64,000 nucleotides of DNA from Takakia lepidozioides (taxonomy: Eukaryota > Plantae > Bryophyta), in contig CM060733.1 in NCBI GenBank assembly GCA_030704615.1, positions 2,852,001-2,916,000 of the forward strand. Reading direction: 5' to 3'. Under the pieces are notes generated by a model. That model saw only the letters and a program-made list of their open reading frames with translations. It was not told the origin of the DNA and did no database searches. Shown piece by piece: positions 4,860 to 27,544 of the stretch. The first letter of the stretch is position 1; each line of letters opens with the position of its first letter. The position numbers were made by a program, and so were the translations under genes.

Positions 4860-5771
4860 CTCTCTCTATGCTGATCATCTTGGCATTGACAAGACGGTAA
4901 AGCGTCTTCAAGAAAAGTACCACTGGAAAGGTTTGAACAAAGACGTCTCTGAATTTTATTGCTAAGTGTGTTCCATATAAATCTAAAACTTTGCTACCTA
5001 GGACCGTTGCTCCACTTAAACTCCATCCCCTTATGACAGAAATGTTTGCACGGGTTGGCTTAGATCTAGTCGGACTTCTCAAGACCACAACCAAGGGCAA
5101 TAGCTACGTAGGAGTGGCTACTGACTACATGTCCAAGTGGGTTGAGATTCGACCTTTGGTCGCTAAAGGATAGTGATGACGTGATGAACAATTCTTTTTT
5201 GATGAAATCATGTTGCGCCATGGCTGTGCCCTTGAAATCTTGACTGACCAGGGTACGGAATTTTGTAACCAGTTGATGGAGGTTGTGTGCTTCAATCTGG
5301 ATGTCAAGCATCGCTTGACAGCTCCTTACAACCCCCAATGCAATGGGCTCACTGAAAGGTTCAACAAGACTATGTGCCAGTTACTGGAGAAAAATGGGGC
5401 CTTAACCGAGGAGTGGGATATCACCTTACCCATACTTATCTTTGCTTATAGGACTTCAGTACATGCTAGCACTCATTGTTTTCCTTTTGAGCTGCTTTAT
5501 GGTCGCAAGGCTCGCACACCTCTTCATGTTCCGGTGCTTCAAGCTCAGGTAGAGGAACCAGTCATCTGGGAAGATTTTCTAACCCGCCTTACTGCTCATC
5601 ATTTGAGTTTGTTTGAAACTGCTAAACACAATATCCATGTGTCACAGGTGGCTCAGGCTTGAAACTATAATCGCAGGGTTGTTTATTCTAAGAACTTCAA
5701 GCTCGGACAGACTGTTTGTGTGAGGTTGCAGCCAGGCAAGTAGGTCACTAAGGCCAAGCTGCGCATCGATG
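4860..5771 (+). pseudogene. Gypsy integrase (HHCC and rve core), cut at the GPY/F motif
   Basis: HLGIDKT, LDLVG, TDQGTEF and YNPQCNGLTERFNKT motifs. Ends ...KAKLRID at the insertion point. Confidence 0.95.
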
Positions 5772-5799
5772 GGGTGTTTGCACGCTACGGTGGACCAAA
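5772..5799 (+). repeat. Left TIR GGGTGTTTGCACGCTACGGTGGACCAAA
   Basis: Inverted match to 27517-27544 with 3 mismatches. Confidence 0.9.
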
Positions 5800-6198
5800 G
5801 GCGGCAGATTCGCTTTCCACACTGGTCCATGCAATTCAAAAGGACGTGGGGCCCGCGCAGCGCGCCACTGCCCGCGAAGTTTAAAAAAAAATGGAAAATC
5901 AGCGCAGGGAGAGTTTGGGGAACCGACAACTGCCGGTTTCCCGTGCGGTGTAGCCAATCGCGTTGGTGGCCCGCATGAGTGGCCACCGGCCGCGTTCTCC
6001 CCCGCCTCCCGTTCTCCCGCCTAAGTCCAATTTTTCCGCGTTCTGAGAGCTTGAAGCTATGGTGTCATCGTGCAGCAGATTTGCACGTGATGAACTGAGT
6101 GCGGAGGAGGTGATAGTACTTAGTGGTTCTTAAACGGATGTAAGGCGCTGTTGTAGAACTACAGTACTGTACCTGAAGGTTGCAAGGGCTTCTTTAGA

Positions 6199-7251
6199 AT
6201 GTCAGGAGGTGAAGAGGAAACGAGTGAGAAGGTGAGAAGGTCAAGAGGAAACGATTTCAGTGTTTTGAGTGGTCATTCTTCGGGTGAGAAGGTCAAGAGG
6301 AAACGAGTGAAGGTAGAAGCAGGGTGCACGATGGTGCAATCGAGTTTCTCTGCACCCTTGCATGCAAAACCCCCTGAACTGATTTTTGATGGGAAGAATC
6401 GTGTCAGTCGGTATGTCTTTGCAGAAAAGTACAAACTTTGTAACCAAGGTATACCTCCCAGAGGTTTGAAGGTCCCTAGAGATTACATAGAGGAGGAGGT
6501 TGCCGAGTTTTTTGGGACTACACTCAACAAGAACGGCTACAGTTATTTACACAATCCTTCAAATATAGAACTTATAACTAGGGTGGAAGAACTCTATATG
6601 ATAGCACATAAAAAAAAAGTCGTCCCTTCCAACCATCAGGTCAGCCACTCAATAGCTCGAGGGATTGTGTGTGAGAGAAAAAACAGACAAGTGAACTGGG
6701 CTGTTTTCGCAGAGTTCGCAAATAGGGACGCCCTTCGCAGAATACAAAGCCTTGCGGGAGTTGCAGATATCAAGAGAAGCATCTCTCTTGTTGAACCTGA
6801 GGAGGAAGGAGTGGAAGTAGGTGTATGCGAACTTGACGAGCTTCAACCCGAATTATCTGACATCCCGGACGCACCAAAGAGAAACATGAGCAGGCCCATG
6901 GTGCGAGCACATCTCCCTGCAAAGACGAGTGGGGGTGTGACAGCACCTGTGCAGGGCGTTGCACAATGGCGTGACATGTTTTGCTATTTGGAAAGGGAGT
7001 TACAGTTATCAGGGGAGTCTCTCGAGATAGTGAAGTTGGCAAGAGATGTGTCTCACCAGGAAGTTCTAGGGTTAAACTCTGAGATGAAAGTTCGTAGAGA
7101 GTTGCATGCCGCCGCAAATGCGAAGCTTGAAACATTGCGGAAGGAACTTGAGGAAGAAAACTTCTTGGACGCGGGGGCCGGCAATTTGCCGAGGCATAGG
7201 ACCTCTTTCAATAGTTATTTTGTGTGTAGATCTCGTAGCGTTAAGATGTAG
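6199..7251 (+). CDS. Element-encoded accessory ORF1 of unknown function (globular N-half plus coiled coil); possible second exon ~7484-7667
   Basis: Uninterrupted 350-aa ORF about 400 bp inside the left TIR, with a heptad-like C-terminal part. Candidate acceptor gtgcag at 7483. Confidence 0.6.
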   Translation: MSGGEEETSEKVRRSRGNDFSVLSGHSSGEKVKRKRVKVEAGCTMVQSSFSAPLHAKPPELIFDGKNRVSRYVFAEKYKLCNQGIPPRGLKVPRDYIEEEVAEFFGTTLNKNGYSYLHNPSNIELITRVEELYMIAHKKKVVPSNHQVSHSIARGIVCERKNRQVNWAVFAEFANRDALRRIQSLAGVADIKRSISLVEPEEEGVEVGVCELDELQPELSDIPDAPKRNMSRPMVRAHLPAKTSGGVTAPVQGVAQWRDMFCYLERELQLSGESLEIVKLARDVSHQEVLGLNSEMKVRRELHAAANAKLETLRKELEEENFLDAGAGNLPRHRTSFNSYFVCRSRSVKM

Positions 7252-7497
7252 GCACCTAACAGTCTTGCAACGACTTATATTAGAATTCAGCTTGTGTGGT
7301 GTGATAAAAAACTTGAAAATGCAAAATGTATATTCTACACCAGTACAATTTGGCATTCTTAGGCCATTTCATAATCAATGTGCCCCATTGCGTTGCATGG
7401 GATTGGAGCTATTGAGTAACATAACTGTGCCGCTCTATTGCACTTGGTAAACCCATTGTTTGAGGTAGTTGTTTTGTGTGCAGATCTGGCAAGACAC

Positions 7498-7580
7498 GCA
7501 AAGTTTTCATGGCAGGAATCAGCGGAAAATAATCTGGGGCAAAGTTTTCATGGCAGGAATCAGCGGAAAATAATCTGGGG
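7498..7580. repeat. 41-bp tandem duplication
   Basis: gcaaagttttcatggcaggaatcagcggaaaataatctggg x2. Confidence 0.9.
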
Positions 7581-8154
7581 GTAGAATGCAACACCACGGA
7601 CATTGTTCAAAAAACTCTCTGTACACTTTCTGGAGTGTTCATCCAAGTCATTCCGGACATAGGTTGAACATGTTGACCATCACTTTCAATAAAACCACAT
7701 TCTACATTTTTTCGCTTGCAATACCTTAAGTAGGGCAGCAGGAAGTGATTGGTGGTGGTGGATCCACACATGGAAAATGTGCCTGTAGTACTAAAATATA
7801 TATTCTCAGGGCCTTCCTCCCGAGCCGCTCAATGTCGAAAGCCAGTCGATGGCTGACACAGACATCACAAGACAATTGTGACACTTGACAACTGTGATGC
7901 CACATATCCTGAATCAAAATGTTCAAGTGAGGCACGATAACTTCAATAACATCCTTTATTAGAAAATTCTTGCATGAAAACAGAGATCACAATGCCACTC
8001 CATAAAATTTGGACACAAAGCTACGAACACATGTGACAAGCAAGTCTTAGCATACTACATTGCTACATTCCAGACACTTGCAACAACAGACACTGTAGAA
8101 ACGTAAGCCCATGGAAAGACTTGCTGTCAGTGAATGATAATCACAGGGACCCGT

Positions 8155-8325
8155 TTACTTCCCCCTGGAATCTCAAAAATTTGTTGACAGCTTGGTGATT
8201 ACTTCCCCCCTGGAATCTCAAAAAATTGTTGACTTGCTGATTACTTCCCCCTAGAATCTCAAAAATTTGTGGACTTGGTGATTATTTCCCCCTGGAATCT
8301 CCCAAATTTGCTGACTTGGTGATTG
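8155..8325. repeat. Minisatellite, 4 x ~41-44 bp
   Basis: ttacttccccctggaatctcaaaaatttgttgacttggtga units. Confidence 0.9.
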
Positions 8326-8426
8326 ACCAACGGACTCTTGTCCGTTTCATGTTGTTACGCTATTCACGTTTCCACTTTCGCGTGATCTGGGTCAAGATTC
8401 GTACTTGATCCTCATGTGAGAAGTCT

Positions 8427-8831
8427 TCAAAGGGAGGCCATCCCAAAAACCATAGGTTTGTTGAGCTTTGGCCACCGCCAGCCAATTTCTCGTAATTTGG
8501 TGCTGCAGGTTGCCAACCTCCTGAAAATCCAACGTCGGGTTAGACGCTCGACTGGATCTTGTACGTGAGGACCTCTGTGAAGGTTTCCTAGCCAATCCAA
8601 GACTACGGAGCACGCATGCTCCACTCTATCCCACCGAGCATGCTCGCGCTTGGCCACCCTCGCTATTCTCAATTGACGCTCAATGTCCATGTTCATACGG
8701 CATTTCAGGTTCTGCTTCGTGCGGAGGGATAGACTTTGCAGCTGATCCACCCGCAACCCGCAAGTCCTCCACACGCTGCTGGGCACTCTATCTAAAAGTA
8801 GTCCTTCTAACCTCCTCCTTCTAGTGCTCAT
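8427..8831 (-). CDS. Small basic ORF of unknown function inside the element
   Basis: MSTRRRRLEG... open for ~134 codons within ORF 8427..9035. No recognised motif. Confidence 0.3.
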   Translation of the reverse strand: MSTRRRRLEGLLLDRVPSSVWRTCGLRVDQLQSLSLRTKQNLKCRMNMDIERQLRIARVAKREHARWDRVEHACSVVLDWLGNLHRGPHVQDPVERLTRRWIFRRLATCSTKLREIGWRWPKLNKPMVFGMASL

Positions 8832-9044
8832 ATTGATCAAGTGACTACAGTGCGCTGCTAGGCGGGAGGGAAATGTGCATGCACAGGCCTGCATAGATAA
8901 TTCAATCAGCCACACCACCACGAGGCAAGCATATAAATTTAGCTGACCACAATATCCCGATCCTTTCAAGTTTCCTTGTTTGTTCCAATGAACTCCAGGC
9001 TCCCTATCCTCTTTAGTAGCTACCATGGATCCCATTCATCACTT

Positions 9045-9330
9045 GGCATCCCAGTGGTAGTGCTGATGAGCCCAAAACCAATGGCCAGCTTTTTGTTGTG
9101 GAGGCAAAGCAAAATTTCCTTTTGCTCCTCCCCCTCATTATACAATACAAAGGTTGTGCCGGGCACACTAGCCTGCCTCCACCATCTGCCCGGACAATCT
9201 TCTCAGCTTTGAGCATGGATTTCGTCAATTCAGGGATGCAATTTTAATTTACGCTGGTGTGCACCTTGTTGCCAATGTCATGGCGGCAGCGACGTCGCTG
9301 CTTCCTCACCCATCTGACCTTCGGACTTCA
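9045..9330 (-). pseudogene. PPR PG-box/E+ and N-half DYW deaminase fragment
   Basis: Manual translation with frameshifts gives DIGNKVHT...GQMVEAG..VPGTTFVLYNEGEEQKEILLCLHNKKLAIGFGLISTTTGMP. HSEK has decayed to HNKK. Confidence 0.85.
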
Positions 9331-10129
9331 GGGTGCTTTTCAGCTTGAATGCATGAAGCACTTCAGTTTCGCGAGTTTGTAGCTGGTACAGTTCTTATTG
9401 TTGTTTTACTTTGTCCACTTGGCCTTTTTATAGACACCACAGGGTGTGTTTTCTGTATTTCTCTCTATTTGTAGCTTGAACTTGCTTTTGTTGCTGATTG
9501 GATGGTTGCCATTGGCCCGGGCACTCTGACTAGCATGCATTACTTACATTGCACCACTCTTTTGCTGTTACACATGCCATAACCCTGCAACCATGTACTG
9601 ATTGCATGACACAAGCCGTGAACTCTGAACCAAACACAGCCTCCCCATGTCTCTCAACAAACAGCTTGGGGAATGAGTTCACTTCTCCATTACTCAAAAG
9701 ATATAATCCAACCAGCATGCTCTCACATCTGGTCAGTCTGAGCCGTGTCTTACTTCTTTCACAACTAATAACTGAGAGAGCCATAACAACAGATCGCAGA
9801 CCCCTAACACCCACACGTGCCCGACCATCATTGTAATTGAAAGACGGCGGCCTGACAGCCCAGCTGCCAATATATCAGACCCATGCCACCTGCCATATCA
9901 GACCCACCCGCCACATTATTACAATGTTGAGTGAGGCCTGCAAGTATACAAAATTCTTTAATAGTGTTGCAATGACAAGTATCAAGTGGAGATGACAACT
10001 ATAAGAAATGAAGAGAAACAGACTGCAGAAGAAAGATTGCCCGACAAGACTGTTAAAGACTTCAACCTGGCAATCATTACCCACGCCTAAGTAGCATGGC
10101 AACCAGATGCTTCCTCTACCTCGTTTCTT

Positions 10130-10420
10130 CCAGCCTTCAGCATGGCTGATCCCTACAACAAAGGTGTGTACTTTGTTGCCAATGTCAATGTGGCAGCGAC
10201 ACAGCTTCTTCCTAACCCCTCGGAACTTCATCAATTTTTTCACCCTTGGAGTATGGACCCACCTGCCAGTTGCAGCATATATATTTGATAGCAACACGTG
10301 AGTAGCAGCATCCTGGTTATCCAACTTCAGAATGGATGTTGCACTGCACATTCAGCCACCTGCAGCTTGCCATGGATTCTACAAGTGCCAAGCAAGGCCA
10401 TCCAAACCCAGCGCACCTAG
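10130..10420 (-). pseudogene. PPR E1-E2-PG-box fragment
   Basis: VWMALLGTCRIHGKLQVAE, then AATHVLLSNIYAATGRW...GVRKK...IDIGNKVHTFVVG. Confidence 0.9.
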
Positions 10421-12947
10421 TTTCGTTTGTATCAACAGTGGAATTGTGCAGATGGGGGACAAGACATAGTTACTTGTGACGGACTAGTTCCTATCCTGAA
10501 TTACTCTCAACACTTTGGAAATGTGGTGGGGAGAGAGAGAGAGGGAGAGAGAGTCGAACATGACAATTCACAAGAAACTTTCTGATGCATCTTGTCGACT
10601 GCTTCTCTCTCATCAAAAACCTATCAAGGTGTTGTGGTCACAGGCACAGCCTTGTGAGAACATTCCTTTTCGGTGCTTCTGCCCTACCTGCCCCTCCACA
10701 CCTGTTGTCCCCAAACTGTGGAACTACACAGAACTATGCTATGCCACTATTGACATAGCTAGAAGATAATGACACTGCAAGCAGCTATCAGACAGACAGA
10801 AATTCCACTAAAATTGAAAATCTGCTTCCCTGTGGCAGGCTGTGCATTGCTGAGGTGTCCTGGCACTTTTGAGGACCTTTGATCCACTGCCTGTTCATTG
10901 TTCACTATGAAGTGTGGTGATATCTTGCGCGAAAAAAATAGTCAGGGTCAGAAACAATTGCTTACAGCCTGCGCACCGGATAAATCATTGTTTGCCCCCT
11001 CTCGTGTGCGTCACTCCACCCTCATCTGCTTTGACTTCCATGCCTTCCACCTGTCCAAACCCAGAAGAGCAATAGTTCAATGGCAGTAATTACTGAGCAG
11101 CTCTCTTTTTATTCAACATAGAAGCATTCACAGACAGACATTCGGCAGACCACTACTTACTGCAGAATAAAAAGAAAGGTTGAACTGATTTCCAGACTGC
11201 AACTAATGATTAGGAACTCATTTGACAACAAGAAGTCAAAATATTCTAACTCAGTGAAGGAAGAGTTCTCCAGGGCTCTAGCTCCGCGATAAGGTCCTTG
11301 CAGCCATCGCATCACCTTTGACCACCACCATGGGATGCTGAATTAAATAAAGCAGCAGGTTCAGCTTCTATTGTGGTATTGATATGAAGTCTAAACTATT
11401 GGAGGAGGCCAGGGAGTTTCCTAGGACTTACCTTGCCACATGTCAGCATGCAAGCAGTTGCGTGGCTTGAAGGAAAACTGTGATAAGCTTGAATGGAAGA
11501 AGCAAGGGTGTTCTCCACAACTGCAAAGGGCCAGAACAGCAACAGGCATCCCCAAAGATCACTAGGCCTTACAAACACTGGCAAATTCACTCTTCCAGTT
11601 GTCTGTGTATTTTTCAAATAACTGCTCTGTGTGTAGCATTGCAATTTCAGCAGCTGCTTGCAACTCAAAACTCATTTCAGAAGCCCAGGTTATCAACTAT
11701 CCAAACAGCATCACTGTTTGCCGGGATATCAATACGTCGATGACCAATGAACGCACGAGTTTAGACTGAGCAACTGCCATTCATCATCATAATCTCAGAC
11801 ATTTCAACAAAGCGCCTAGCCCTCAATACGCATACTGTTTGCATTTTCTCTAGCGAGAGACCAGAAACATAAGCTTAGGAAAGTCAGCATCAGATCCACA
11901 CTCAGCACAGGCCCACTATCTCCAAATCCACATGCGTTCATTTGAATCACAGAGACGGCTAAGCAGCACAACCGACACGCTCCTGAGGCCCTAGCCTAGC
12001 ATTGTAGTTCGATACTCGGTCCACATGGCAGAGGAGAGGAACTCACAGCAAGAATCACAAAAATGAAAGTACGAATGGTGGCAACGAATGCGATCTGGGC
12101 AGAATCGCAGCAACCTATCAGCTGCCAGTTTGCCATCTTCTAGGATCGCGGTTGCATGCACTTCACAGATGACAGCGACAACCATTTGCTCATCCAATCG
12201 CATTGCTGGTACACCGTACACCACTGCCAGATCTCTAGACTGAATCATACTCCAGTGAGTATGGCCATGCCAGTGACAGCTCGCACGCCACTGCCAGATT
12301 CCTCTCCAGACTGCTCACCAAAACCTCAGATCATGCATTCAACTGCTGGAAAATCGTGCAAATATATGCTCACCTACACGTCAGGATGAGCTATGACCTG
12401 CAAATGGGTTTCTCGGCACATTCACCTTTCTGCCTCAATAATCCCACCATTGTCTCGGGTCTGAAAAATATTCCATCCAAAGCTTCTCCTCATCTCTGCT
12501 TTCTCTGTTTTCAGATAATTTCTTGTTGCCACACTAGCAGTAACATGTCCTCATCATGTCCTCATCACCCTAAACCACCACGCATGTCATCAATTGTGCT
12601 AACTTGGACATCTTCACATGCAAAATCAGGGACCAGGCTGTTAAGTGGATGACATGCGTGAAGAATAAATTGCCTGGTTTTACCTGGTCTGCTGAGCTGC
12701 TGCTTCTTCTACTTGCCCATCCACCCATGCTGGACCTCACCATGACCACAGCTTTCCAAAGAGGACCAACAAAGGGAGTCCACAATGCCTTTTCTGGCAC
12801 TTTTGGGCATGTCAGGAGGCTCTATGGGGCATGGCAACTGAAAGTCATGGGACGCCATGGTACGGAAACAAACTCCTTGATGTGGGACGCCACAACTTGG
12901 ATGTTAGTTTCTACAAAATGGACAAGTCGATGATGACATCGACTCCC

Positions 12948-15900
12948 TGTTGGTAGGGGTGTGTGTCGCGGCCCTTTGCCTTGAGGGCAGGGGGTCGGGA
13001 CACAAGAGGGGCTGCCCCTGTGGTGGGCAGTGGCAACAATAGGTACGGGGGCTGAAGCACCCTTGAGTGCCCAAGGCACTAAAGGAGGCGGAGGCGCTCA
13101 CTAGGTGGAGCCCTACACACCGGGTTGCGGTGGGGGTGGTTCCACGAGGGATGGTGGTAGCTTAGTGGGTCTTACTGGGGGTGGCATAAGACTCACCATG
13201 GGGCGGAGACCTTGTGGTGGGAGTTGTGGGGAGTCTTGAGACTCATCACGGTCCATTGGGGCCGTGGTGGGTGGGCCAAGACTCACCGTGACTCATCACC
13301 GTGAGTCAAGGGTCTTCGTGGTGGTTCGTCATAAAATGACTGGGTTGTTTGTGAAACCCCCGCGGATAGTCACAGAAGTATATATAGGAAGTAGTAACCC
13401 CGAGAACGGTGCAAGCCCGTTGGTGACAAAAAACTAGTGAGTAAGCGTGCGAGCTGGAAAGCGACCAATGTGTAGGGAGTTCCGGACTGCCATCAACCAA
13501 ATGGAATTTCCACTGGGCCCAAATTGAGCGAGGGTCTTATGGAGGAGTAGAAAGGGACCGTTATGTCCCGGTGAGCAGCCGAAGCTCCAAGTTGGCTCGG
13601 CGGCCAGTTTGGAGTTAGGCGCGCGCATCAAAGCGAGTAACTATGACGTGAAGGGGAGCTTACCGAAGTGAGATGCGCGACACTACTGGTATGGCCCACA
13701 AATGGAAGAGGTCTGCGACATCCATGAATCCAAAGCGCTCAGGAGTTTATATGACTAGGGTACCTCCAAGGAGCAGCAGGGCGTGCGATTCCAGTCGACC
13801 GTTCGAACATCTAGGGGCCGATTAAAACAACTGCAGGCAAACGGTCTACTGCCTATCCTCCCCTCAACATCCGATCGCTATTCAAGCAGAGGCAAGTTAG
13901 GAGAGCTTGACCTCAATGACAAACTACCCACTGGGTTATTCTTTCAATAACACGATTGACAACAGTCAATTCCAGGTAGAAATTTCCACGTTGCTCCAAT
14001 GCAGTTTATGAGGATGTTGGAGGCGTGGAGCATACATGATCATGATACGATTTCATTTTCATGCTCGGATAAGTCAGTGACAGGGATCAAGTATGGGTTC
14101 CCTATGTGTTTTAGTTCATTCATGCAAAACAGACACTGCAGTGCAGCAAGTAGCAGACTCCCGGCAGTGATCTCTTTTTCCCAGGAGGACAATTCCACCT
14201 TTTGGTATGATTTTAATTCCAGGAGCTTCCAAGGAGTCTCAGTCTCCTATAAAAAATCCTAAAAAGGTTTTATCCAGCGGTAGCGGTCGACTGGGATTTT
14301 GCTGTGTTAAGTACCTTCAGTGAACAGGACAAGGCCGGAATCGAGCGTTGTTTGTGGAGGGCTTTTTATTATGTGGTTAAAAGGGAGACAAGATGATGTG
14401 GAAGGAGTATCAGCCCCTGGCGTCGTTCTGTTCCCAACCAAAAAATTATGCTACGCGTTGAAACATAGTTTTCACGTGCAATTGGCGCTTGTTTATTTTT
14501 TATGGTTGATGGTTGGACCACATGAACTTAAGGATTGGTGGGTATTTCCAGCATACCACAAGGGAGTTTGTGGCCAAGTTTCAAGAATTTTGGAGGAAGT
14601 TAGCAACAATTCACTATTTTTTAGGGTTTCGGGCGACCGTGGCAAAGAGAAATTCATTTTGAGGGAATTTTTGGGTCCACAAGAATTAGCACCGCCCCCA
14701 ACCAGCTGGCTGGCCACCTACCAACCAAGAAGTGGTTGATTGCCTATTCCATCCAAGGATTTTTGGATGTCATCCATTCTTTTTTTATAGTATTTCTAGT
14801 ATAAGTAGGTTAGGATTTGAGCTTGCTCAAGACTTCACTTGTGTTTTTTTTGCTTGTTAGTTGCTTGTTAGTTAGTTGCTTGAAGCTAGCTAGAGAAGCT
14901 TGCTTTATGTTTTGGCAACTAGCTTTTGTTGTGAAGTTCCTAAATTGTTTGTTGGCTAGAGCTTAGCCTAGATGTTTTAGGCAAGCTTAGAGGAAGCATC
15001 TAGTTTGTGCTAGGGAGACCAGGGAGATCCTAGGACCTAGTGTGTAAGGGCCAAGAGCCATTTTTATGTGAAAAAAGGAGAGCATCTTTCCCAAAAAGCA
15101 AAGAGGTTTTGTCATTTGAGAGTGTGGTGAGCCTTTAAGGAGTGAAGAGGAGGTAGGAGCAACAAACCCATAGGAGAGGTGAGCACTACCCATTCCCTTC
15201 AAGTTTTGGTAGCCTACTTAGCCAAGTGACCCCCTTTGAGTGGAGAGGAGATAGTCTAAGCCTTTGTTCATGTGTGATGCATTTTGGTGTTCTCTTGCTT
15301 GTCCATTGTTGTTGGAAGCTTATATCTAACCTTAGCTTGGTCCTAGCTACCTAAAGAGTAGTGGGAGCTTGGGGAAAGAGAGAGACTAACCCTCCTTAGT
15401 GGCCAAGAGGCCCAAGGAGTTGTCATTTTTATCTATGCTTTGTCTTTTGGCTTAAGAGTGGAAAGATCTAACCCTTAGAGAGCTAACCATGCAGTGGGAT
15501 CTCTAGGAGGGGTGTGGGTTCTCTTCGTTGTTGGCCACTAGGCTTGATGTTCATGTGTGAAGCTAGCTAGGCATGCAAGGGAAGCTAACCCACTAATATT
15601 GGGTAGATGCTTGCATAAAGCTTAGTGGGAAACCTTCTTTTGTTTTGTTATTTCATTTCATTTGGCGCATGTGAGTGTAGCTTAGTGTGTACTAAGCCCT
15701 CTAAACTTGCCATTTATTTGTCTCTTTGTTAAGCATATCACCCCCCATAGGAGAGGAGCAAGGTGGAAGAGCTAGCAAATTTGTGATGTTTTTTCAAGTT
15801 TATTTTGTCGCTGGAAATTTATTTTTCATGCATAACTAATTTACAGATCAAAAATCAGATCTAATATGGCCTCCCTAGCTTGGTTAAGCTATGGAGGACC

Positions 15901-17330
15901 ATAGCTAACCCTAGGGAAGGTTAAGCTAGCCCCTTTGGGGTTAGCTTGGGGTTTATTTCTTTGTTTTTTTTAGGTGCAAGCAAAAGACCATGGATTCATG
16001 ATGGGGTTCCCAAAAGTGAGGCGCCATAAGGGCGATACCATGGCAATAGCCATGAGTTGGCTATTGGTTTAAAGCGCGCTGCAGGCCCGGCGGAATCCGA
16101 GGCGTTGACCACCCCAACCCCCAAACTGCTTGACAGCAGCCATGCAGGGGGGTTAGGCCGTGCTGGCCACCTAAGCGTATTCTGGTTTTACCCAGCGGTC
16201 CGTAGCTTTACCCGGGAGGTCGCGACCAGCGGTCTGTCGGCCCGCCCTACAACGTGCTGCCACGTTGCGTTGAGACCATCGGGTAACCAGGATGGTCCGG
16301 ACCAGTGGGTAAGAAATTAAGGGGGGGGGTCTTAGCTAGGAAAATACTTTTTGAATGGTCTTGCCTAGTTCGATTGAGGGAGTGTTGAGATGTTGCATCC
16401 TTAGCGGCTGGTTTGGGAATTTTAATGGAAGGTGAAGGCATTTGAGGCTTTCGTTTTGGTATGTCATAGGTGGTCAGATCGGGAATCGGCCGCTCGGCTC
16501 ACACCGAGACACCTTGCTCACGAAAAGCGGACGATAAATCCAAAGCTTTTGGGAGGGGTAGAAGGGGGTTTGAAGTGGGAGAGGGAGTTATTTCCGGTTG
16601 CACCCAGCCTTAAAATGCAGATAAGGTGGAGGAACCAACAGCGGACCTACCAAAATATATTATTCATATGTGAGGAGCGTTTTTTGAGGAATGTGGAATA
16701 GTGGATGGTTAGGAATGGATGGATGAGGGGCGGATGAGATAAGCAGTATTTCATCTTCAGAATGGATGTAGGACGGATGAAATAAATGCAGGATATAAAT
16801 GCAGTTTTTCATCCATTATAGGGATGAACGGCGGATGATCTGTGGATGATAAATGCAGTTTTCATTCGATATTTTAACAGGTCATTTTAGCTCTAGGGGG
16901 TTTGAACCTGAGATCTAGAGGCTAGGGACTATGTACTAAAGGCTGAGGGGATTGTTTGGACCTATTAGGCCAATTCCCTATGGTTCCACATTTTTGTCTG
17001 AATTATCTAGAGGCGAAGCCATAGATCATTGGAAAGCTTAGATAAATTCCTACCTTATGCTTATTTTTCTAGAATTAACGAATTTTTAGCCTTAGTAATT
17101 AATTTTGAAGTGCGTTTTTCTGTTTAAAAAATTACCAAAAAATAAGAATACAGGTAAATAAATCTAGGATTTTTATCTCTATTTTCTAATTATCATAACT
17201 TGCCTAGGATAATATTTTTCCCATTTTTCTTATCAACATCTAGTGCGAGAAAATAGCCAGGGGCCCTCCCAGCTAACGAAAAAATGAAATATTGTCCAAG
17301 TAGAGCTTTTTGGCTAGGCTAAAGTGTGCT
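12948..17330. mobile_element. Largely non-coding, LTR/TE-like nested insertion(s); boundaries uncertain
   Basis: Abrupt TGTTGG start, TATATA box at ~13378, low-complexity AGCTAG- and GGATG-rich tracts, no recognisable protein. No TSD found. Confidence 0.35.
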
Positions 17331-17859
17331 CTCCCCTTCGGACAGAGGGAACGTAGGCGACCTCTTTGCACACACATGCGATCCGGGGGGGCGTGTAGGT
17401 GAAGCAACCCAGACCTAAGCGACTTGCCCTTAACGCTTTCGATAGCAGTCAATCCAAGTGAAGATCTTCCGAGCACACCGACAAGCTTCAGGGCGAAGCC
17501 GTGTTAACCGTAATAAAAAAAACTTGGAAGACAATTAGCTAGGAATAAACTCATCACTCAAATACAAGTCAAGCCAAGTGCACCCCACGCCATGGGGAAT
17601 CCACACTACGACGCCATAGGAGACAACAAACGAATTATGCCCCGCGTGCGTAGGAGTTGAAACCTGCGTTTGCTGATAGTTTAGGATAGCGGGAGGCAAT
17701 TCCCTCCATCAACCGTTAACCCTCCGCCAAGCTTAGCGACACACTTCACGGGTGGGCGATTCTTGAGCCCAACCCACCTCGACACCGGACTCCAGGCCCC
17801 GGATCGATGTTAGCCTTTGTTTTCCCCGCGAATGTTGCGCGCGCGGCGAGGCTCGTCAT

Positions 17860-19704
17860 TGTGTCTTCACTCCTGCTGCCCTTGTGTTCTTTGCAATAGA
17901 CACTCTTTCAGTCACAGGTACTATATGTTTCTTGGATTTTTTTCTAGGTGAATGTCCTTCATCGGTGTCATTTGCTCAACGTTTGCTACAAGTTTTCTGC
18001 ACAGGTGGTGGGGACATAGCATCGTCCTCAACAGCAACATCCACCATAGCCACACCAATCTTGGGACCAGAAAGAGAGCGGGGCTCCGTAGAAGTTTCAA
18101 CATTTTCTTCATCATCACACATTACCAATTGTTTCTTTGCCATCTTCTGAGCAGGTCTAGCAGGGGATGGAATTTGACGAACTGGTGGTTTTGAAAGTGT
18201 CTCAACTGCCATGGATTTAGGAATCCTGTGCTCTGTTCCACTTCCAGGTTCAGTTGTACGACTTTGAAGCAACCGATTTGGAGATGACACATCATCTCCC
18301 CCACCACCATTGGGTGTCTTCGCAGTAGCAGCAATCTCAAAGCTTGCAATAGATGGGCTCAGGCGCGATGATCTGGCTGCTCCCACATGGGAGCTTAAAT
18401 GAGGAAGAACATGATTACCAGAAAATGAAACCGAAGTGCGTGTAGGGCCTGCTCCCAACCCACAATGACAACAGTAAATGACTGATCACATGTTGATCAT
18501 AGTCTAACAAATTGACATTACATTTCCACAATGGACTCCAAAACAAGTCAGCAAACATTTAGGGAGCAGAGATGATGTTCCATGGATGTCCATGGACTTT
18601 ATATGACATGACAGTTGACTACCATGGAGGAAAATAACATGGAAACAGGAGCTATGGAGGAATCATGACACCATAACATGGACAAAGAAGGAGCCATCTT
18701 GGAAAAACAAGGAATTCAGGGCTACCAATGGACTCCATAGGGAATGGAGTGAATTCGGAAAAATAATAGAATGTCACAGACAAATAAGGCACATTCCTGG
18801 AAATGAAATGAAATTCAGGATGCACCAAGGACTTCAGAGAGAAAGTGGTGACTAAATAGGAACAATGATAGTGACATGGACAAAGAAGCTGCATCTCAAG
18901 AAATGCCATGGAGTTCAGGATGCACAATGGACTCCAGAGGCCATGCATTTCACAATTTTGGAACAAAATTTAGTAGGATGAACAAACAAAAGCAAACAGG
19001 GAGCAGGTCATGGACTTACCCTAGATTAGGTCGCCATAGGCGTTGTCCGTCGGTTCATATTCCCAATCTCCACTTCCCTTCGTTGCATCGTCACCAAGTG
19101 TTGACGGTCGTTTCATGCCCACACTAGTCCACCAGTTTGTGTGGAGCTCTTGTCCACAATCTTTCTCCAAACATGTACATGATGTGGAGAAATGCGCTAG
19201 TGCACACCATGAATGGTATGCATGACCGCAAGACACCACCAAACAATCCCAGTCTGGCTTAAATCCCTTGCCACAAAAAGCACATTGAGAAATAGTTACA
19301 AATTCAGTACTTCTATGTTCTGCACTTTCACCATAGAGGTTGGAGTGAGGGGAAGGTGTGAGTTCAGGCCTGTGCAGGCCACGATCCTTAGCTCGTAGCT
19401 CTTTTGCGATAGCCGTCTTCTGCCTCTCACAGGCTTTGTGGCGATCGAAAGCTGCAGACCGCGCATCTTCATCGGCCTTAGCCTTCTCCAAGCACAATTT
19501 GTGCACCGATTCCCTCCCCTCCATGGATTCCCTAATGTGGTCAACAATGCCCAACTGGGAGTCCAGCTTACGCTGCAAAACTTCCAAACCCTCACGACAT
19601 GACACCACATCTGCTGCTTCCACACTGTCCGCAGACAAGAACGCGCTCATCTTCCAGCATGCAGCCAAAGTGCTTCGCTGCCGGAGTAACACCTTCATGT
19701 TCAC
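17860..19704 (-). pseudogene. Element-associated coiled-coil + RING-like gene (5'-truncated, spliced, premature stops)
   Basis: CAFC-x12-CGHAYHSWC-x9-CLEKDC (RING-H2-like). A TAG sits just before the gtaagt donor at ~19019. A disordered exon follows at ~18450-17860. Confidence 0.7.
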
Positions 19705-19734
19705 ATTTAAAGGTGATGTTGTCTGGCTTCAAAC

Positions 19735-19830
19735 CTTTTTGTTAATTCTTTCAAAGAGATGCAGGGCCTTCCTGTGACGACCATGCTGAGCATATCCTGC
19801 AATCATTGCACTCCACCACACCATTACAAC
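19735..19830 (-). pseudogene. Single captured PPR motif
   Basis: WSAMIAGYAQHGRHRKALHLFERI. Confidence 0.85.
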
Positions 19831-20029
19831 AAGCGGATGACATGTGTTGAAGAAGAAAGTGCCGGATTTTGACAAGTCTGCTGCTGCTGCTGCTTTCTGC
19901 AGTTGCCCATCCACACATGCTTAATTGCTGAAACACATGTCTCCCTCAAAGCCTATTGCGAGGCAGTTGCCGACATCTCGTGTTGTTTAGCTTACATGTC
20001 GCAAGCTTTACCTGCACCCCTCAAAACAC

Positions 20030-20125
20030 ATATCGTCCTTGAACAGATCATTACCAAACATGAAATATGCTAAGGCAAAGGAGTATGAAAGGGCTCGTCG
20101 TTCCCTAAACAGTTTGAGCTCCGCA
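20030..20125 (-). pseudogene. ARIADNE (RBR E3 ligase) fragment
   Basis: LFRERRALSYSFALAYFMFGNDLFKDDM resembles the Ariadne domain of plant ARI1/ARI2. Confidence 0.7.
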
Positions 20126-20534
20126 TCTGAGAGGAAGATTGTCTCATCTCTGATTGTGTCTGCACTGTATTCTCCTCTTCTGTATGGGGGCAATACAGAA
20201 GTGGAGAAAACAGTCCAGACTCAATGCCGGACTGAGTGTGGAATGCTATTAGGCGTGATTTAAGTTGATGAACCCTGCACCCACCCAGTTATCAGGTGCT
20301 ATCTACCAGCTTACAAGACAACATGAACCCAAATGCCACTCATGACACGAGAGTGCAGGGGTGCAATCTTTCTAAGCTACAGGCAAAAGAAAACAAATAC
20401 AAGGCATACCTCATTGCTGCAGCTCCTTGTACAGCTCACCTTTACCTGCATACCCCAGTACCAAATACATGTGTGTGCCAGCTAAATCCCCGTATAATTG
20501 GTCACGTCAAGACACTTAAACCTTTCCAGAAAAC

Positions 20535-20716
20535 CAGTATTTCCCACAAGAACAAACCCCATCTTCAAAGTGATGAAAGCGGTTTGAGTCCCGTACCACA
20601 ATTGTTCAGCCAACAGTCTTTGAGATGAGCTTGGTGGCGGTGTGGCAGTCTCCACACACCCGAAGATTCTTCATCAGATGGAGAGGCATCCCAGGGGCCG
20701 TGCTGATCAGCCCCAA
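20535..20716 (-). pseudogene. DYW deaminase C-terminal half
   Basis: [59 protein letters not shown]. Confidence 0.93.
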
Positions 20717-21680
20717 ACCTTGTCCAAATTAATATGTGGTGCAATCCTAGCTTTCAGGATGTCTGCATGGACCTTTCTGCCCAGTTCCAGAGCTCCTAGG
20801 TGTGCACACACATTGAGAACACAGAGGAATGTAACACTGTCCGGCTGCACCCTTTCCCATCGCATTTCCTGATAGAGCTTGAAAGCCTCCCTATCACACC
20901 CGTGCTGAGCATATCCTGCAATAATGGCATTCCATGAGGACACATTTTATTCAGTCATATTGTTGAACACCTGACATGCATCCTTCATGCTCCCACACTT
21001 GGCATACATGTCAGCAAGGGCAGTCTCCAGGATAATATCTGGTTCAATTTCAGCTTGGATGATGTCAGCATGCACCTCTTTGCCCTTTTCCAAGGATCCT
21101 AAGCAGGCACATGCATTGAGAACGCAAATGAACGTGACCCTGTTGGGCATTGTCCCTTCCCATAGCATTTGCTCATAGATATCAAAAGCCTCTCTACCAC
21201 ACCCACACTGAGCATACCCAGCAATCATTGCACTACATGAGACCACATCATGTTGAACCATTTTGTCAAACACTTGACGTGCATCCTTCACACTCCCACA
21301 TTTGGCATACATGTCAACAAGGGTATTCTCCACAATGATATTTATCTTTATTTCACTTTTGTTGAGGTCAGCATGGACCTCTTTCCCCTTTTTCAGCGAT
21401 CCCAGACTTGGCACACGCGTTGAGAACACTGACATATGTGGCCTTGGTGGGTGTTACCCCTTCCACTTGAATTTGCTCATACATCTCAAAAGCCTCTCTA
21501 GCACACCCATGCTGGGAATATCCTGCAATCATGGTGTTCCAACAAACCACGCCTTGTAGAGACATGTTGTCAAACACTTGGCGCACATCCTTTACATTCC
21601 CACACTTGGCATACATATCAGCAAGGGCAGTCTCCAGAATGATATCTTGTCGAATTCCAGCCTTATGAATGATATCAATC
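20717..21680 (-). pseudogene. PLS-class PPR repeat tract (frameshifted)
   Basis: Repeated ALxDMYAKCG, SWNAIIAGYAQHG and TFLCVLNxCA motifs across three ORFs. Confidence 0.95.
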
Positions 21681-22675
21681 AAGGAAGCATAGTACCCCAG
21701 TAATTGACACACGCACAAGTCATAAAGTATCTGTCCCATCCAACACTACCAATGAATTGTGCTCGAAATATTGAAACACATGCTCACCAATCATTTAACA
21801 GCAATTTATTTCACACAAGCAGGACTAATCAGACCTGGCTGTCTCCAACACAACCCATAGCCCAATAACCTAAATTTTTTACGAGAACATGAATGTCTGA
21901 AGTCAAAACCCCGTGGAACATAGTACAATACAACAGTGCTTTTGGTGCAACAAGGAAGTGTGTACATATTTGAAGGTGTAAATCCACTGGACTTATCAAT
22001 CAATAGACCTCACCTAATGCTACTCAGTACCTGTTACTGACTCTAAACCGATTCAACATCCCAGTGTCCAATCTTACATGATGGTCTTGTTTGACAAATG
22101 CTCAGACAGGAAATGTACAAGTTCTGATGGCTTCTCGTCTGCTTCACACTCCAAGTACTGCCAACCTCACATGACTAGTCAATACAGTGCATCGTTTACA
22201 GCTCCTATTCACTGTCATTTTACATTGAATCTGTCTTTGCCCCAACTCTAGCTTCTTTAAACTCAACTGAGCACATAAAACATGACTATATTGGCAGCAG
22301 CTGACCCCAAATTTGAGGCACTACAATACAAGGCAGTTTATATTTTGTTGTCGACCCATCAAACATTTGCACGCAAATTCCAGGAGACGAACCACACTGC
22401 TGCTATCCAACCCAAACACACCTGCAGAGTGAGTCCAGCTGGCGTCTTTGAAGAAAAAGATGTGTTGGAAGAGGAGGTAAGCCGCTTGGCCTGGGTTTGC
22501 ACCTCCACATGCACGGGGTGCCCTGCTTGGGCCAGTTCCTCTACTGCCTCTGTCAGTGCTGCTGAAAAAAGGCCTGTACACCGCTGCTTGGGCAGCCGTG
22601 CTATGGCTGCTGTTAGCTGCCTCTGAAAACCCATATCGAGGAGCTTGTCTGCCTCATCCAGGATCAATACCGGAA
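21680..22675 (-). pseudogene. DEAD-box helicase fragment (DDX55/Spb4, RH18-like), 3 exons and 2 introns
   Basis: [12 protein letters not shown]...[10 protein letters not shown] | YLECEADEKPSELVHFL...KTII | YFMTCACVNYWG. GT-AG introns 22158-22421 and 21731-22077 are phase compatible. Confidence 0.9.
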
Positions 22676-22980
22676 AACGTCCACTTTCAGAACACCCCAA
22701 CACACGCACCACTTCTAAGGCCTATGTTGTAAAATGAGATACTCCTGCGTCCCAATCCAGACAGTCCCTGTAGGATGGGAACTCATGTACCACTAGTCTA
22801 CCATACCATTGCAGTTCTTACATGCAGTCCAACTTCATAATACTTGTAACATGATGTCCCCTTCCCCCATCATTTGCTCATAGGTCTCCAAAAGGGAAAT
22901 CCCATGGGAAAGTAAGTATGTGATGGGCACAACAATGTTCACCTTACAGAATGACGGGCTGCAACTGACATCTTGAAAGC

Positions 22981-25900
22981 CTAATTGTCAGTAGAGTCCA
23001 GCTCCGCAATCGCGTGCATTATCCCCTCTTCTGCATATGGTGGCAATTTATACACTGGCTTGTTCCCTGACACCCTGTGGTCAGCAGGTAGCATCGGGAA
23101 CTTTATGGCACGCACATGCTCAGGGTGCCAAAAGCTCGCATCTGCATTTTTGCGTAGCACATAGGTGTCGTCGTCTGCCCCCCACTTCTGATAGCGTTTA
23201 CCAGCCACAGCCATGTCACCTTGGCCAAATGAAGTGCGCCATGCATCAGTGAAGCGCTTCTTCACGTCATGAAGAGGCCGAGAACAACAGAGGATGTAAA
23301 ATTCCACATTTTCCTCGTCGTCGTCCGTTGCCTTCACCGCAAAATTGTCCCCAATCTGTAGGACGGAGGCAAGCAAATCTCCATCATGTCCAAAGTGGTC
23401 CCACCCCTCGTCTGCCCCCTCCACCATGGCTTGCCTTACATCTCTGGTGTTCTTGGGGGTCAGGATCTCCAACTCCCACTGTCCACACCATTCAACATTC
23501 TCACAAGCACTCCATTGTGAGTCAACACAAAAGCAACAAAACAAGCCAAATCCTTCCTCATCAGTTTGTTTGTATCACCACTAGGGACTGATCTCACCGA
23601 ATGCACTTTTCGGGTTCCCTTTATAGGGTCACAATCATGTCGTGAACGTTGGTTGATGTCAAATTTCTTCACATTCCAAAAAAACACGTTTTACATCCCG
23701 TCTTTGCCCAGTGTATGAAGTTTCAGGTCTTGATGACAACCGCTCTCTCAAGAAATTCACCACGTCCTCGGCATTGGCCCTTGCCGTGCCCTGTACCAAA
23801 AAAGCTCCAAAGCAAGGCACAACCACCGGTGACATGAGGGTACCGACTCACAAAGTACCATGGGACTTTGCTTTTAAATTGGGAAGCACAACCGTCGCTC
23901 CATATCCAATGCTCTCCTGGCCGAAGGAACATAGTGGATACATGTTTCCAATGCTGTACGAAGTAATTGTCGTGGGTTTTGTCGTCCGAAATAAAAAAAT
24001 GGTACTCCATCAAGCTATCACTTCGAGGGTCATTAGGATCAGGCTCAGGGTTTCGACGCCAAGTTATTAAAACCATGATGGTAATCTGGTAGGAATGCCA
24101 GTGCATTGATTGCACTTCATTCTGAATCTCAAAAGTATAGTTCTCTGCAAAATCAACCACTGAAACCAGAATATCAGATGGGAAATACATCAAGCATTGT
24201 CGAAATTGCTTGTCCTCCCACCTTGCCACGAAATTGTGGCGAATGAATTATTGCAGTTTAGGCTTCAAATATGATACGAGCTCGTGAGGTGGAGAGCGTT
24301 CGTGGACGAGAGAGTCTTTTTTTCTCCTCTCCTTCCTTTGTCAATACTATTTGTTTCGCAAAGTGCTTCCAATCTACCATGTGCTCCGACGAGACATCCT
24401 CATCCTCCTCATAAGGACAAAGAGCTAGATTGTCAACACCACAGTTTGCGCACTCTCCATACATGCGCTCGATTTTGTGCCAATCACTATACTGGTTTTG
24501 GGGGCATACCACTTACTCCCACATGTGGGACACCTTGTCAAAGGTGTTTACAGCAGCTTGGCAACCAAGCTGATCATCTGATTGACACACGGATTCACAT
24601 TGACATGGGCAAGAAGAGTGGATGCCCGATTTTGCTCTCATGTTGTTGAAGCCCAATCGGAGCTCCTCCATTTCGACGTGGTAAATACAACAACAGACAT
24701 TCCTCTCTGTCATCCTCTTCACAAAGAACGGTTTAAGAGAATCGAACTTGCGGCTCCCAATTATGATATTGGGGTGGGCTCTTTGAAATCGTAGAAAGAA
24801 GTCCATCTACACACGCAACAAACTTGTTAGTCCATAAATGTCTACTGTACATTATCCATGGAAGCCCATAGAGAGTCCACAAATAAACTAATGGACTCCA
24901 AAGCAACTCCGTAAACCCTAAACCCCACATTCAATCCAGTGCAGTCCACATACATTCCAGACTTGTCCATGTCATTGCAAACAAAGGTACAACAGTGGAC
25001 TGGAATTCCACAAGTCCACATACATTCCAGACTTGTCCATGTCATTGCAACAAAGGTACAAACAGTGGACTGGAATTCCACAAGCCCACATACAATCCAG
25101 TGGAGTCCACATACATTCCACACCTATCCATGTAATTGAAAAAATAGGTATACTTGTGGACTGCAAGTCCACAAGCCCACATACAATCCACATTTCTCCA
25201 TACACAATCCACGTGTCTCCATAAACTGGAACCAACAGTGGAACTGTGGACTGCTACTACCAAATTTTCCACATTTCTGCTATACCATGACTATGGAGAT
25301 GGACGCTTCTCCAAGCAACCTTATGCATTCCATACAGACATACCTAATTCGGAAGAACTCCACTAAGTCCAATTCAGTTTAGATAAGTGGTCTACACTGC
25401 AGGACAACAAGGCCATACCCTAATTTCCACAACTTGCTATCCTAAGGCCTACATGTCAGGAAGACACTCATTCTTCCATAGCAACTACTCATGGACTTAA
25501 AACTAGTGAATGGACTACAAGAGTTGAATGTACCTGTGGCTCCATCAAGTAATGGGTGGGCTTCACATCGTAATCAAACGCAGCCAGCCGCTTCCGTGTT
25601 ACATCTTTGGAATTCGGGCTGAAGCGTGTTTGCGTAATCCACCAAGAGGTCACGACATCCCTTGTTGTAGCTGAAATGATATCGTTTCTATGCTTCCTTT
25701 TTGACACACTCCACAGGAATCCTCCAGCAGAGTCAACCATGCTTGTGCGGCGAGCAACCGCTTAGCTGACGTTGCGGTGATGAATACCCAACATGCTGGC
25801 CGTGGATCTATACGATACATTGACGCCCTTGCTAACTGCAGCTGTTAATAGGGCATGCTTGCTAGCAAGCTTACCAGCAGAGTTAGAAGTTTTAGTCTCA

Positions 25901-26290
25901 GCCAACGATTCCATCAAACCATCTATAATGGTTTGTTGAGTAAAAACAGTCTTTGGATCTTGCAAACCAACTGGCAGCACATGGATGAGGTCAGAATGCG
26001 ACAAAACCTTCCCCATAATGTGTCTCTTGCTTGCGGGTCCCGGAAATACATTTAAAGTGGTAGTAATGTGTCCCACAATCGTCTTGCAGGCTCTTCGAAT
26101 TTCCCGATCCCTTACAACCTCGTCCTTCTCCTCCTGCCTGGAAACAACATCAGGTTGTAGGACACCATCAGGTTGCTTGTTGCGTTCTCGAAAACGACGA
26201 ACGCGTGCAAGAACCAGCGCCCTTTCTCTCTGAGCCCTCTCCGTCTCTCTCTGTGCGTTCAATTCCCTCTCTTTGCGCGTGGCTTTGGCC
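22981..26290 (-). pseudogene. Sola2-type DDD/E transposase, decayed, with intron 24807-25533
   Basis: CCCIYH and CANCG Cys motifs, then VVDFAENY, EVQSMHW, SDDKTHD, WSDGCASQFKS and FFGTGHGKG. Frameshifts and a deletion follow HGKG. Confidence 0.8.
24842..25260. repeat. GTCCAC/TGGAC-rich tandem repeats in the transposase intron
   Basis: Repeated gtccacatacattccagacttgtccatgtcattgc...gtggactggaattccacaag units. Confidence 0.85.
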
Positions 26291-27516
26291 CGCGCACGTA
26301 TGCGTTGTCATGCTCGTTGTGATGCTGCAGTCGTCACGGCCAGGTCTCAACGCTCAAAGCCTGCACATAGCGACGAACACACATTAGGTTTAAAACAGAT
26401 CCTGTACTACTTGATAATCAAATGTAGCAAAATTGCAGAAACCTACATGACTAATATCTCCCTGAGTGACTCCCTGAGTGGCACCTACTTTCACGATGCA
26501 AAGGAACATGCTTGCAAGTTCGTAATGCCTGTGACAGCCATCCCTGGAGATTATCTTGTGAACGTGAAAGAAAATGACAATGCATAGGCCCATCGGCCAG
26601 AATCCACCAGCCACCAACGTGCATGTAAGTTTTAGGGCAGCATTCAGAGGTTCCACAAACATTCAAACTCAATATTTCCAATTCCAGATCATCGCAGCTT
26701 AGGTATTCATCATCCGAATCATATATCAACATTGTAATGAACCTGCACACAACTCGCTTCGACACACCTCACCGAAGTGTAGAAGCAAGGCCACAATGCA
26801 GGGGAATGAAACAGATTCCAACAATGCGAGCAACTCGCATTACATGAAAGAGGACGAAACACGAAACACAGCAAGTGTGCGAGCAAATCGCGATACGCGC
26901 CCTTTCACGACCGTTTTGAAACTCCCCGGTCACGAAACAGTTTTTACGAATTTTTTAATCCCTAAACCGACACGTCATTGCATCCGTGGCACCTGACCGT
27001 GCATATGAAATCCGTTATTTCAACGGAATTTTCCATATGACACCTGGCGCACCTTCCCCACGTCATCCTACACCTCTTTAGAAAAGGGTAAAACCCCAAA
27101 ATCCCCTTATTTTGAAAAAATATGGACAAATGAAAATTGAGCTACTTTTTACCTATAAATTAGTCCATAGCTCTTTATCTTTTATGTTTTTTTCCCATAT
27201 GAAAGTGGATTTGGGGAGTATTCAAAAAGTGCACCTCTAAACTGTTTTCCATTGTGCCTTTTCACAAGTGTACATTATGTTTATTTAGTCCATAAGTTTG
27301 TATGCTGTAATAGTTACAGTCCACAGTTACAACTTTGAAAGTCCATAGCTCTTCACTACAAAAACTTTTTGGGAATCCAATAATTGGTATATCTTCCAAT
27401 TGTAGATCATTAAGAACCTTACAACATAGAAATTGCAATGAAATTTTTAAATTGTCGATCCACTATAGGTGACACTATCAAGGGGGGTCACTGCAAAAAC
27501 TGCACAGTTACGCATT

Positions 27517-27544
27517 TTTGGTCCAACCTAGCCTGCAAACACCC
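27517..27544 (-). repeat. Right TIR
   Basis: Reverse complement is GGGTGTTTGCAGGCTAGGTTGGACCAAA. Followed by ATGG. Confidence 0.9.

Follow-up and report, generated by a model that had tools for sequence, protein, structure and literature searches.

A 21.8-kb Sola2-like, cargo-bearing transposon within a Ty3/gypsy integrase of the land plant Takakia lepidozioides

The insertion and its host element

The window analysed here, a 64,000-nucleotide stretch of the Takakia lepidozioides assembly GCA_030704615.1 (contig CM060733.1, positions 2,852,001 to 2,916,000 of the forward strand), holds a 21,773-bp insert (5772-27544) that is bounded by 28-bp terminal inverted repeats (TIRs) and contains a broken transposase gene together with pieces of host genes. 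We interpret this insert as a cut-and-paste transposon of the Sola2 superfamily that inserted once in the C-terminal (GPY/F) region of the integrase of a resident Ty3/gypsy retroelement, and assign this reading a probability of about 0.85. The features on which it depends are listed below with the evidence for each.

3640-5771, plus strand: host Ty3/gypsy pol left of the insertion, comprising RNase H, integrase zinc finger, integrase core and the start of GPY/F (Pfam, homologue alignment)
5769-5771, no strand: left target-site duplication, ATG, or ATGG at 5769-5772 if a G of the G-run is counted (direct reading)
5772-5799, plus strand: left TIR, 28 bp, beginning GGG (end comparison, pattern scan, inverted-repeat scan)
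22981-24806, minus strand: transposase exon B, with zinc-rich region, catalytic core (DFAENY, QSMHW, SDG, HGKG) and C-terminal domain, a pseudogene (motifs, homologue alignment)
24807-25533, minus strand: transposase intron, 727 nt, GT..AG (contig joint 24806>25534, splice dinucleotides)
25534-26465, minus strand: transposase exon A, a basic N-terminal region in a single frame (RNA-like contigs)
27517-27544, minus strand: right TIR, 28 bp, ending CCC (end comparison, pattern scan, inverted-repeat scan)
27545-27547, no strand: right target-site duplication, ATG, or ATGG at 27545-27548 (direct reading)
27547-27660, plus strand: host integrase resuming with its GPY/F module, GPYLIHAI...VHV, the first Gly codon of which starts at 27547, within the right ATG (alignment)

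The two ends are sharply defined. The left TIR (GGGTGTTTGCACGCTACGGTGGACCAAA) and the reverse complement of 27517-27544 (GGGTGTTTGCAGGCTAGGTTGGACCAAA) are identical at 25 of 28 positions, and an inverted-repeat scan placed them as the top inverted pair across the 21.8-kb stretch. When the window was searched with a 25-nt end pattern at three mismatches or fewer, only these two sites matched, against 0 of 100 shuffles; we write the end motif of the element as GGGTGTTTGCA-N-GCTA-N-G-N-TGGACC. The junctions read cgATG/GGGTG...CACCC/ATGgtc, with an exact 3-bp ATG repeat at both sides, and the termini GGG...CCC fit the 5'-GRG...CYC-3' form of Sola2. An earlier note on this DNA, made from the letters alone, had described 28-bp TIRs (25/28) with ATG(G) flanks, and both parts of that description hold, ATG being exact and ATGG obtained only with the G-run base.

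By its domain content the host is a decayed Ty3/gypsy pol on the plus strand, in which Pfam detects RT_RNaseH (3640-4362, 2e-38), Integrase_H2C2 (4570-4962, 3e-08) and the integrase core, rve (5180-5659, 1e-05), and which can be aligned left of the insertion to the integrase homologues P0174-P0176. To examine the empty site, each flank was aligned singly to P0175. The alignment of the left flank extends to two residues short of the junction and so places the junction near residue 185; that of the right flank (GPYLIHAI...) begins at residue 188, at the GPY motif, such that the two meet in frame, within 2 residues, on P0175. As flanks that abut in frame imply one integrase broken at a single point, this supports a single insertion event, as the earlier note had claimed of the two ends. 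The host linker between the K-L-R and G-P-Y motifs (5660-5771 and 27547-27660) is 2 residues shorter than that of P0175, which is probably family variation, and may alternatively reflect a small loss at the insertion site.

The transposase and its superfamily

Sola2 is said to be group E.12 in the 2014 work of Majorek et al. In the Takakia element, the DFAENY, QSMHW, SDG and HGKG motifs all lie in one minus-strand open reading frame (ORF; 23723-24229), in agreement with the DFxENY/QSxHW/SDG/HGKG signature that the earlier note had given for Sola2. This catalytic-core piece has 2,432 homologues (E<=0.001) among 1.8 billion representatives, and these include full-length proteins of ~800-1,200 aa from a sea urchin and a nemertean. 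The gene was queried exon piece by exon piece. No Pfam family was found in the core piece, and the 6 full-length homologues also scanned gave no match at the Pfam cut-off; the repetitive homologue P0002 returned Pfam matches to unrelated families only, with no qualifying stretch.

For comparison we used the published transposases of Sola2_DFa-2 and Sola2_PPa-1 (supplement of PMC3627910), which are set beside the Takakia copy here block by block.

First Asp block: MDFKENI in DFa-2 and CDFKENI in PPa-1; VDFAENY here
Middle block: SDVLNH in DFa-2 and SQVLNH in PPa-1; SDDKTHD here
Second Asp block: FWSDGAKHFKS in DFa-2 and FWCDNARHFKS in PPa-1; IWSDGCASQFKS here
Third Asp block: YHGKSxxD in DFa-2 and PPa-1; GHGKG here, with the Asp deleted

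Compared by eye, the blocks occur in the same order in the Takakia copy and in both published proteins, and the first-Asp (D-F-x-E-N) and second-Asp (W-S/C-D-G/N...F-K-S) blocks of Sola2 are both present. We assign the element to Sola2 because these motif blocks match published Sola2 sequences, because its termini are GGG...CCC, and because elements that share its ends, described below, make 4-bp duplications; on the same three grounds we concur with the earlier identification of a Sola2-type transposon. The accompanying GRG...CYC rule was checked on the examples at hand only, and accommodates both the Takakia termini and the GAG...CTC of DFa-2 and DFa-3 (PMC3627910 supplement).

The transposase gene is heavily damaged. 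Alignment with relatives places stops in exon B at 24513-24515 and ~24248, and frame changes near 24320, 23790, 23685 and 23540, while the catalytic core has a 5-codon gap. Directly after HGKG some 25 residues have been lost with a frame change, including the third catalytic Asp (D153), which is almost invariant among homologues; its absence from the H-G-K-S/G-x-x-D motif is a lesion of this copy, not a difference of the family. Exon A contains one in-frame stop and no in-frame ATG, and its upper limit, 26465, is the reach of an RNA-like contig. With these lesions the transposase is a pseudogene, and the element non-autonomous at best.

The two-exon structure derives from contigs of sequencing runs of the same organism (X1, DNA; X5 and X6, probably RNA), which were placed on 22101-28000 only. 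Contigs of X5 and X6 skip 24807-25533, and the DNA run X1 has no such joint. Exon A is covered by X6 record 22 (25598-26465) and X5 record 16 (25591-26290), and the RNA-like contigs as a whole span 22941 to 26465, ending well before the right TIR, a reach which implies that spliced transcripts of the family start about 1 kb inward of the right end. Contigs over the gene carry several substitutions and indels relative to this copy, among which C>T and G>A predominate, and probably come from other family copies. The transposase family is thus probably still transcribed and spliced in these two runs. Two further joints were set aside. In X6 record 18, a 1,230-nt RNA-like contig, the spliced exons (24033-24806) are joined to 22725-22887 on the opposite strand; this strand-switch joint (22725/24033), confined to one contig, we ascribe to a variant or rearranged copy or to an assembly chimera. 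A non-canonical joint (22668>22941), in one X5 contig with 26 nt on one side, was likewise discounted as a variant copy or chimera.

The intron contains a tandem array of 70/91-nt, AGTCCAC-rich units (window 24874-25254). The core of the array, AGTCCAC/GTGGACT, shares GTGGAC with the TIRs (GGTGGACC); at 27311-27331, 210 bp inside the right end, lies a 21-nt stretch that matches the array in inverted orientation. The repeats may be extra transposase-binding sites.

Terminal repeats shared with other genomes

The end pattern also matches 24 JGI metagenome contigs, which are AT-rich and plant-like (moss-type) and are otherwise without similarity to the Takakia element. Most of the matches are paired ends of a family of ~0.79-kb MITEs (miniature inverted-repeat transposable elements), carried on contigs L003-L026 (Ga0116226-31, Ga0209208, Ga0209611), for example at L012:4942-5731. 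The MITE ends are identical to each Takakia end at 25 of 28 positions, and the L018-type end at 25 of 27. Six MITE insertion sites with both flanks were available after duplicate contigs had been merged. Perfect 4-bp duplications occur at three of the six (TAAT/TAAT, TAAT/TAAT and TTTA/TTTA); two others match at 3 of 4 positions (GTTC/ATTC and AACA/AACC), and the last is decayed (ACTA/TGTA). In addition, a Sola2-like transposase gene is situated 0.5 kb from the MITE of L020, and 0.9 kb separates the MITE of L016/L021 from a transposase remnant, of the N-terminal region.

Paired MITE ends flanked by 4-bp duplications show that this end sequence genuinely terminates transposons and has been conserved between species. 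As far as these flanks can be read, they show that the transposase acting on such ends makes 4-bp duplications, as expected of Sola2. The metagenome contigs matched yielded no other large element with such ends, and the relative loci L001 (P0078) and L028 (P0003, core 56% identical) have neither similar ends nor a RING motif. Whether TIR copies elsewhere pair around a transposase of this kind, a check proposed with the original prediction, is therefore answered only in part: the ends do pair, and in L020 a transposase gene is 0.5 kb away, but the pairs themselves enclose only ~0.79-kb MITEs.

Cargo and interior

The interior of the element, in which the Pfam scan covered all open frames, contains the following features.

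6157-7248, plus strand: open 364-codon frame, ORF364 (ATG at 6199), with a helical C-terminus (no Pfam family above cut-off)
8155-8324, no strand: 41-bp tandem repeat, 4 copies
9023-9321, minus strand: PPR fragment with an E2-like piece and the start of a DYW deaminase (Pfam DYW_deaminase 5e-06 at 9023-9202; tblastn at 9250-9321)
9878-10351, minus strand: PPR fragment with E motif (Pfam E_motif 4e-10)
10352-19023, no strand: ~8.7 kb without recognisable domain, repeat pair or RNA family (Pfam, repeat, Rfam and tRNA scans)
19024-19728, minus strand: open 235-codon frame with coiled-coil and RING-H2-like zinc finger, CAFC...CGHAYHSWC...C.C (Pfam zf-RING_2 8e-04, below cut-off; RING regex)
19744-19824, minus strand: short PPR-repeat fragment (tblastn with the window's own PPR frames; repeat family D13)
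20710-21775, minus strand: PPR (PLS-type) block of three ~303-nt units, with stops and frame changes (Pfam PPR 1e-22, PPR_2 1e-20; tandem period 303)
22101-22721, minus strand: DEAD-box helicase fragment extending to past motif III, intron kept (Pfam DEAD 1e-08); 22101 is the start of the stretch compared with contigs
22859-22892, minus strand: PPR-motif fragment, 34 nt (repeat family D19; contig pile-up)

The cargo thus includes at least five PPR/DYW fragments and one DEAD-box fragment, all of which are on the strand of the transposase. The intron of the DEAD-box fragment (22158-22421, GT..AG on the minus strand) is skipped in 96%-alike X5 and X6 contigs, which most likely represent the mRNA of the parent gene; its retention in the element implies that the fragment was captured as DNA. 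The E2 motif is present twice (tblastn), and more than a single capture or gene must accordingly have supplied the PPR pieces. The earlier note had called the element multi-gene and cargo-carrying. The gene fragments (PPR/DYW, DEAD-box) and both open ORFs bear out the cargo, but with a pseudogene for a transposase they do not amount to a working multi-gene unit. Every run contributes to a pile-up of hundreds of contigs over 22859-22892, whose loose ends fall at 22858 and 22892 and whose summed depth is ~114,000, consistent with a very large family of PPR genes in this organism.

The size of the element is the aspect for which a different history deserves most weight. Under this account, a Sola2 element of ~12-13 kb with its RING gene grew later by unrelated insertions, duplications and rearrangements, chiefly across 7250-19000, so that its present size is secondary; we consider this a serious possibility, at somewhat less than an even chance. 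It draws on the ~8.7 kb (10352-19023) without recognisable content, on the position of the PPR N-terminal repeats (19744-21775) and C-terminal pieces (9023-10351), which share a strand and are separated by ~9.4 kb, as though something had divided them, and on the doubled E2 motif, which points to patchwork. Across the 78 open frames that overlap 7250-19050 and are 55 aa or longer, Pfam recognises only E_motif, DYW and RING, all of them outside 10352-19023, together with one borderline TackOD1 match (E 0.01) to which no position was assigned. Set against growth by insertion, self-BLAST and the inverted-repeat scan revealed no nested element, that is, no long terminal repeat (LTR) or TIR pairs; Pfam detected no second transposase or reverse transcriptase domain in the interior; and no Rfam family or tRNA occurs inside the element. 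A scan for a dispersed, family-specific palindrome in the element was also negative. For later insertion into the interior, which the earlier note had allowed for, there is in sum no positive evidence, and none against.

Neither does size set the element apart as sharply as had been suggested. The statement that Sola2 elements are typically only a few kb long was too strong, given that cargo-bearing Sola2 elements measure 10.3-14.4 kb (PMC3627910) and some Sola elements exceed 15 kb (PMC10741241). Nor did an unusually large family emerge, for the only paired copies of the ends that were found are the ~0.79-kb MITEs, in another species.

The two open ORFs raise a further alternative, namely that the element represents a working Pack-type Sola2 lineage, in which the gene fragments, the RING gene and ORF364 were amplified as a cargo set of the family, with the ORFs under selection. 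The RING frame and ORF364 are uninterrupted while the ~850-codon transposase bears ~7 lesions, and by a rough estimate the chance that both would remain open at the lesion density of the transposase is ~1-2%; they may thus hint at selection on the accessory ORFs. The co-orientation of the cargo with the transposase, and the DNA-level capture indicated by the DEAD-box intron, would also suit such a lineage. Yet neither ORF has a homologue detectable by sequence search, no relative locus examined has a RING motif, and a single copy has been seen. In a protein atlas, the look-alikes of the RING-H2-like ORF are of RING type (0.85-0.89), generic and below the recognition threshold, and those of ORF364 are weak, being plant proteins partly with Transposase_28, again below threshold; the AF2 model of ORF364 is poor (pLDDT 35), and exact-sequence look-ups of ORF364 and of the ORF at 8427-9032 in public assemblies gave no match. 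On balance we regard an amplified Pack-type lineage as unlikely. Slightly less likely again is the stronger version, in which the land-plant Sola2 is an undescribed lineage ('Pack-Sola') that captures host fragments and is accompanied by a RING-H2 E3-like gene of its own, as well as by a second ORF. Were that version true, ORFs kept open beside a dead transposase would imply a selected role of their own, which could be, for example, to tag a host silencing factor or the transposase for degradation.

Discussion

We favour the view that the Takakia insert is a dead, cargo-laden and large but otherwise fairly ordinary member of Sola2, which entered the gypsy integrase once. Several points weigh against this view, and explain why we stop short of certainty. 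The strict flanking repeat is 3 bp, since the 4-bp ATGG needs one G of the left G-run. The likeness to Sola2 was judged by eye, on motif blocks taken from a supplement, not by scored alignment. The link between these TIRs and the transposase comes from this one copy and the adjacency in L020 only, with no second large copy to accompany them. The empty site was judged at the protein level only, against an integrase of 45-50% identity, and the linker here is 2 residues shorter. Finally, the RNA nature of runs X5 and X6 is only guessed. The flanking repeat would, read strictly as ATG, suit membership of a superfamily with 3-bp duplications (CACTA/EnSpm-like or PIF-like) instead of Sola2, but that reading is largely refuted and highly improbable, as the termini are GGGTG and not CACTA, no Pfam transposase of those groups occurs in the exon pieces or homologues, the motif blocks agree with published Sola2 sequences, and elements sharing the ends have 4-bp duplications. 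CACTA/EnSpm membership specifically was rejected on the GGGTG termini and the lack of any Transposase_21/24-type Pfam match.

If the element behaved as its family does, a DDD transposase of ~850 aa would have been made from the two-exon gene beside the right end, would have recognised the 28-bp inverted ends and cut the element out, and would have reinserted it at a target opened by cuts staggered by 4 nt. In-frame stops, frameshifts and the deletion of the third catalytic Asp preclude self-mobilisation, and the present copy would be mobile only if an intact relative supplied transposase. Between its ends the copy has gathered pieces of host genes, taken up as DNA and lying in the orientation of the transposase; the chemistry of transposition, the route by which the cargo was captured, and the arrival of extra DNA before or after the insertion, are the conjectural parts of this scheme.

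Sola2 was described by Bao, Jurka and Kapitonov (2009; cited in both PMC10741241 and PMC3627910). A review (PMC10741241) gives Sola elements 4-bp duplications and, for the most part, lengths of 2-9 kb, some being >15 kb, and records them from the moss Physcomitrella; for Sola2 the 4-bp rule is given in both PMC3627910 and PMC10741241. The closest published parallels are the Sola2 elements that carry Fanzor, of 10.3-14.4 kb (PMC3627910, supplementary table), namely DFa-1/2/3 and PPa-1/4/5 of dictyostelid amoebae. The Takakia element resembles these in its DDD transposase of ~850-900 aa, whose motif blocks follow the same order, in its short, imperfect inverted ends that open with G-R-G, in 4-bp duplications (seen here in the elements sharing its ends), and in a length >10 kb with a passenger gene beside the transposase. 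It differs from them in its land-plant host, in its size (21.8 kb vs 10.3-14.4 kb), in its ends (28 bp vs 12-22 bp), in its cargo, which comprises host gene fragments, a RING-like ORF and ORF364 in place of Fanzor, and in being dead.

A second comparison concerns transduplicating plant transposons. Pack-MULEs are short, non-autonomous Mutator elements that occur in many copies. Like these and other transduplicating plant transposons, the Takakia element holds several host gene fragments, one with an intron, co-oriented between inverted ends, and it exhibits the Pack-type feature of unrelated host gene fragments captured as DNA. Unlike Pack-MULEs, it is a single large copy still bearing its (broken) transposase, and its cargo is known from one copy.

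The value of the locus lies foremost in providing a Sola2 element with clean boundaries from the land plants, a group in which descriptions of the superfamily are scarce; no relevant paper came up when the literature was searched for Sola2 in ferns and bryophytes. Host gene pieces, one of them intron-bearing, between Sola2 ends are also without a published report for Sola2 in the literature searched. The copy contributes the exact nesting in a gypsy integrase, cargo that is both more plentiful and different, the evidence of splicing, and ends shared across species with 4-bp duplications. The copy opens no new question by itself, being dead, and with large, cargo-bearing Sola2 elements already published. 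The 28-bp end, however, is conserved between two plant species despite unrelated interiors, having outlived all other sequence, and the end motif offers a simple handle for finding the family and its MITEs in bryophyte-grade genomes.

Other repeats in the window

Elsewhere in the window, the stretch 59900-64000 is densely occupied by interleaved direct and inverted repeats, with units of 33-243 nt and inverted arms of up to 221 nt at 81-92% identity, and resembles either a complex satellite or several short non-autonomous elements nested together. Two direct copies of a ~200-bp repeat, at 54078-54273 and 59505-59716, are 83% identical and separated by 5.4 kb, and may represent the LTRs of a further decayed retroelement.

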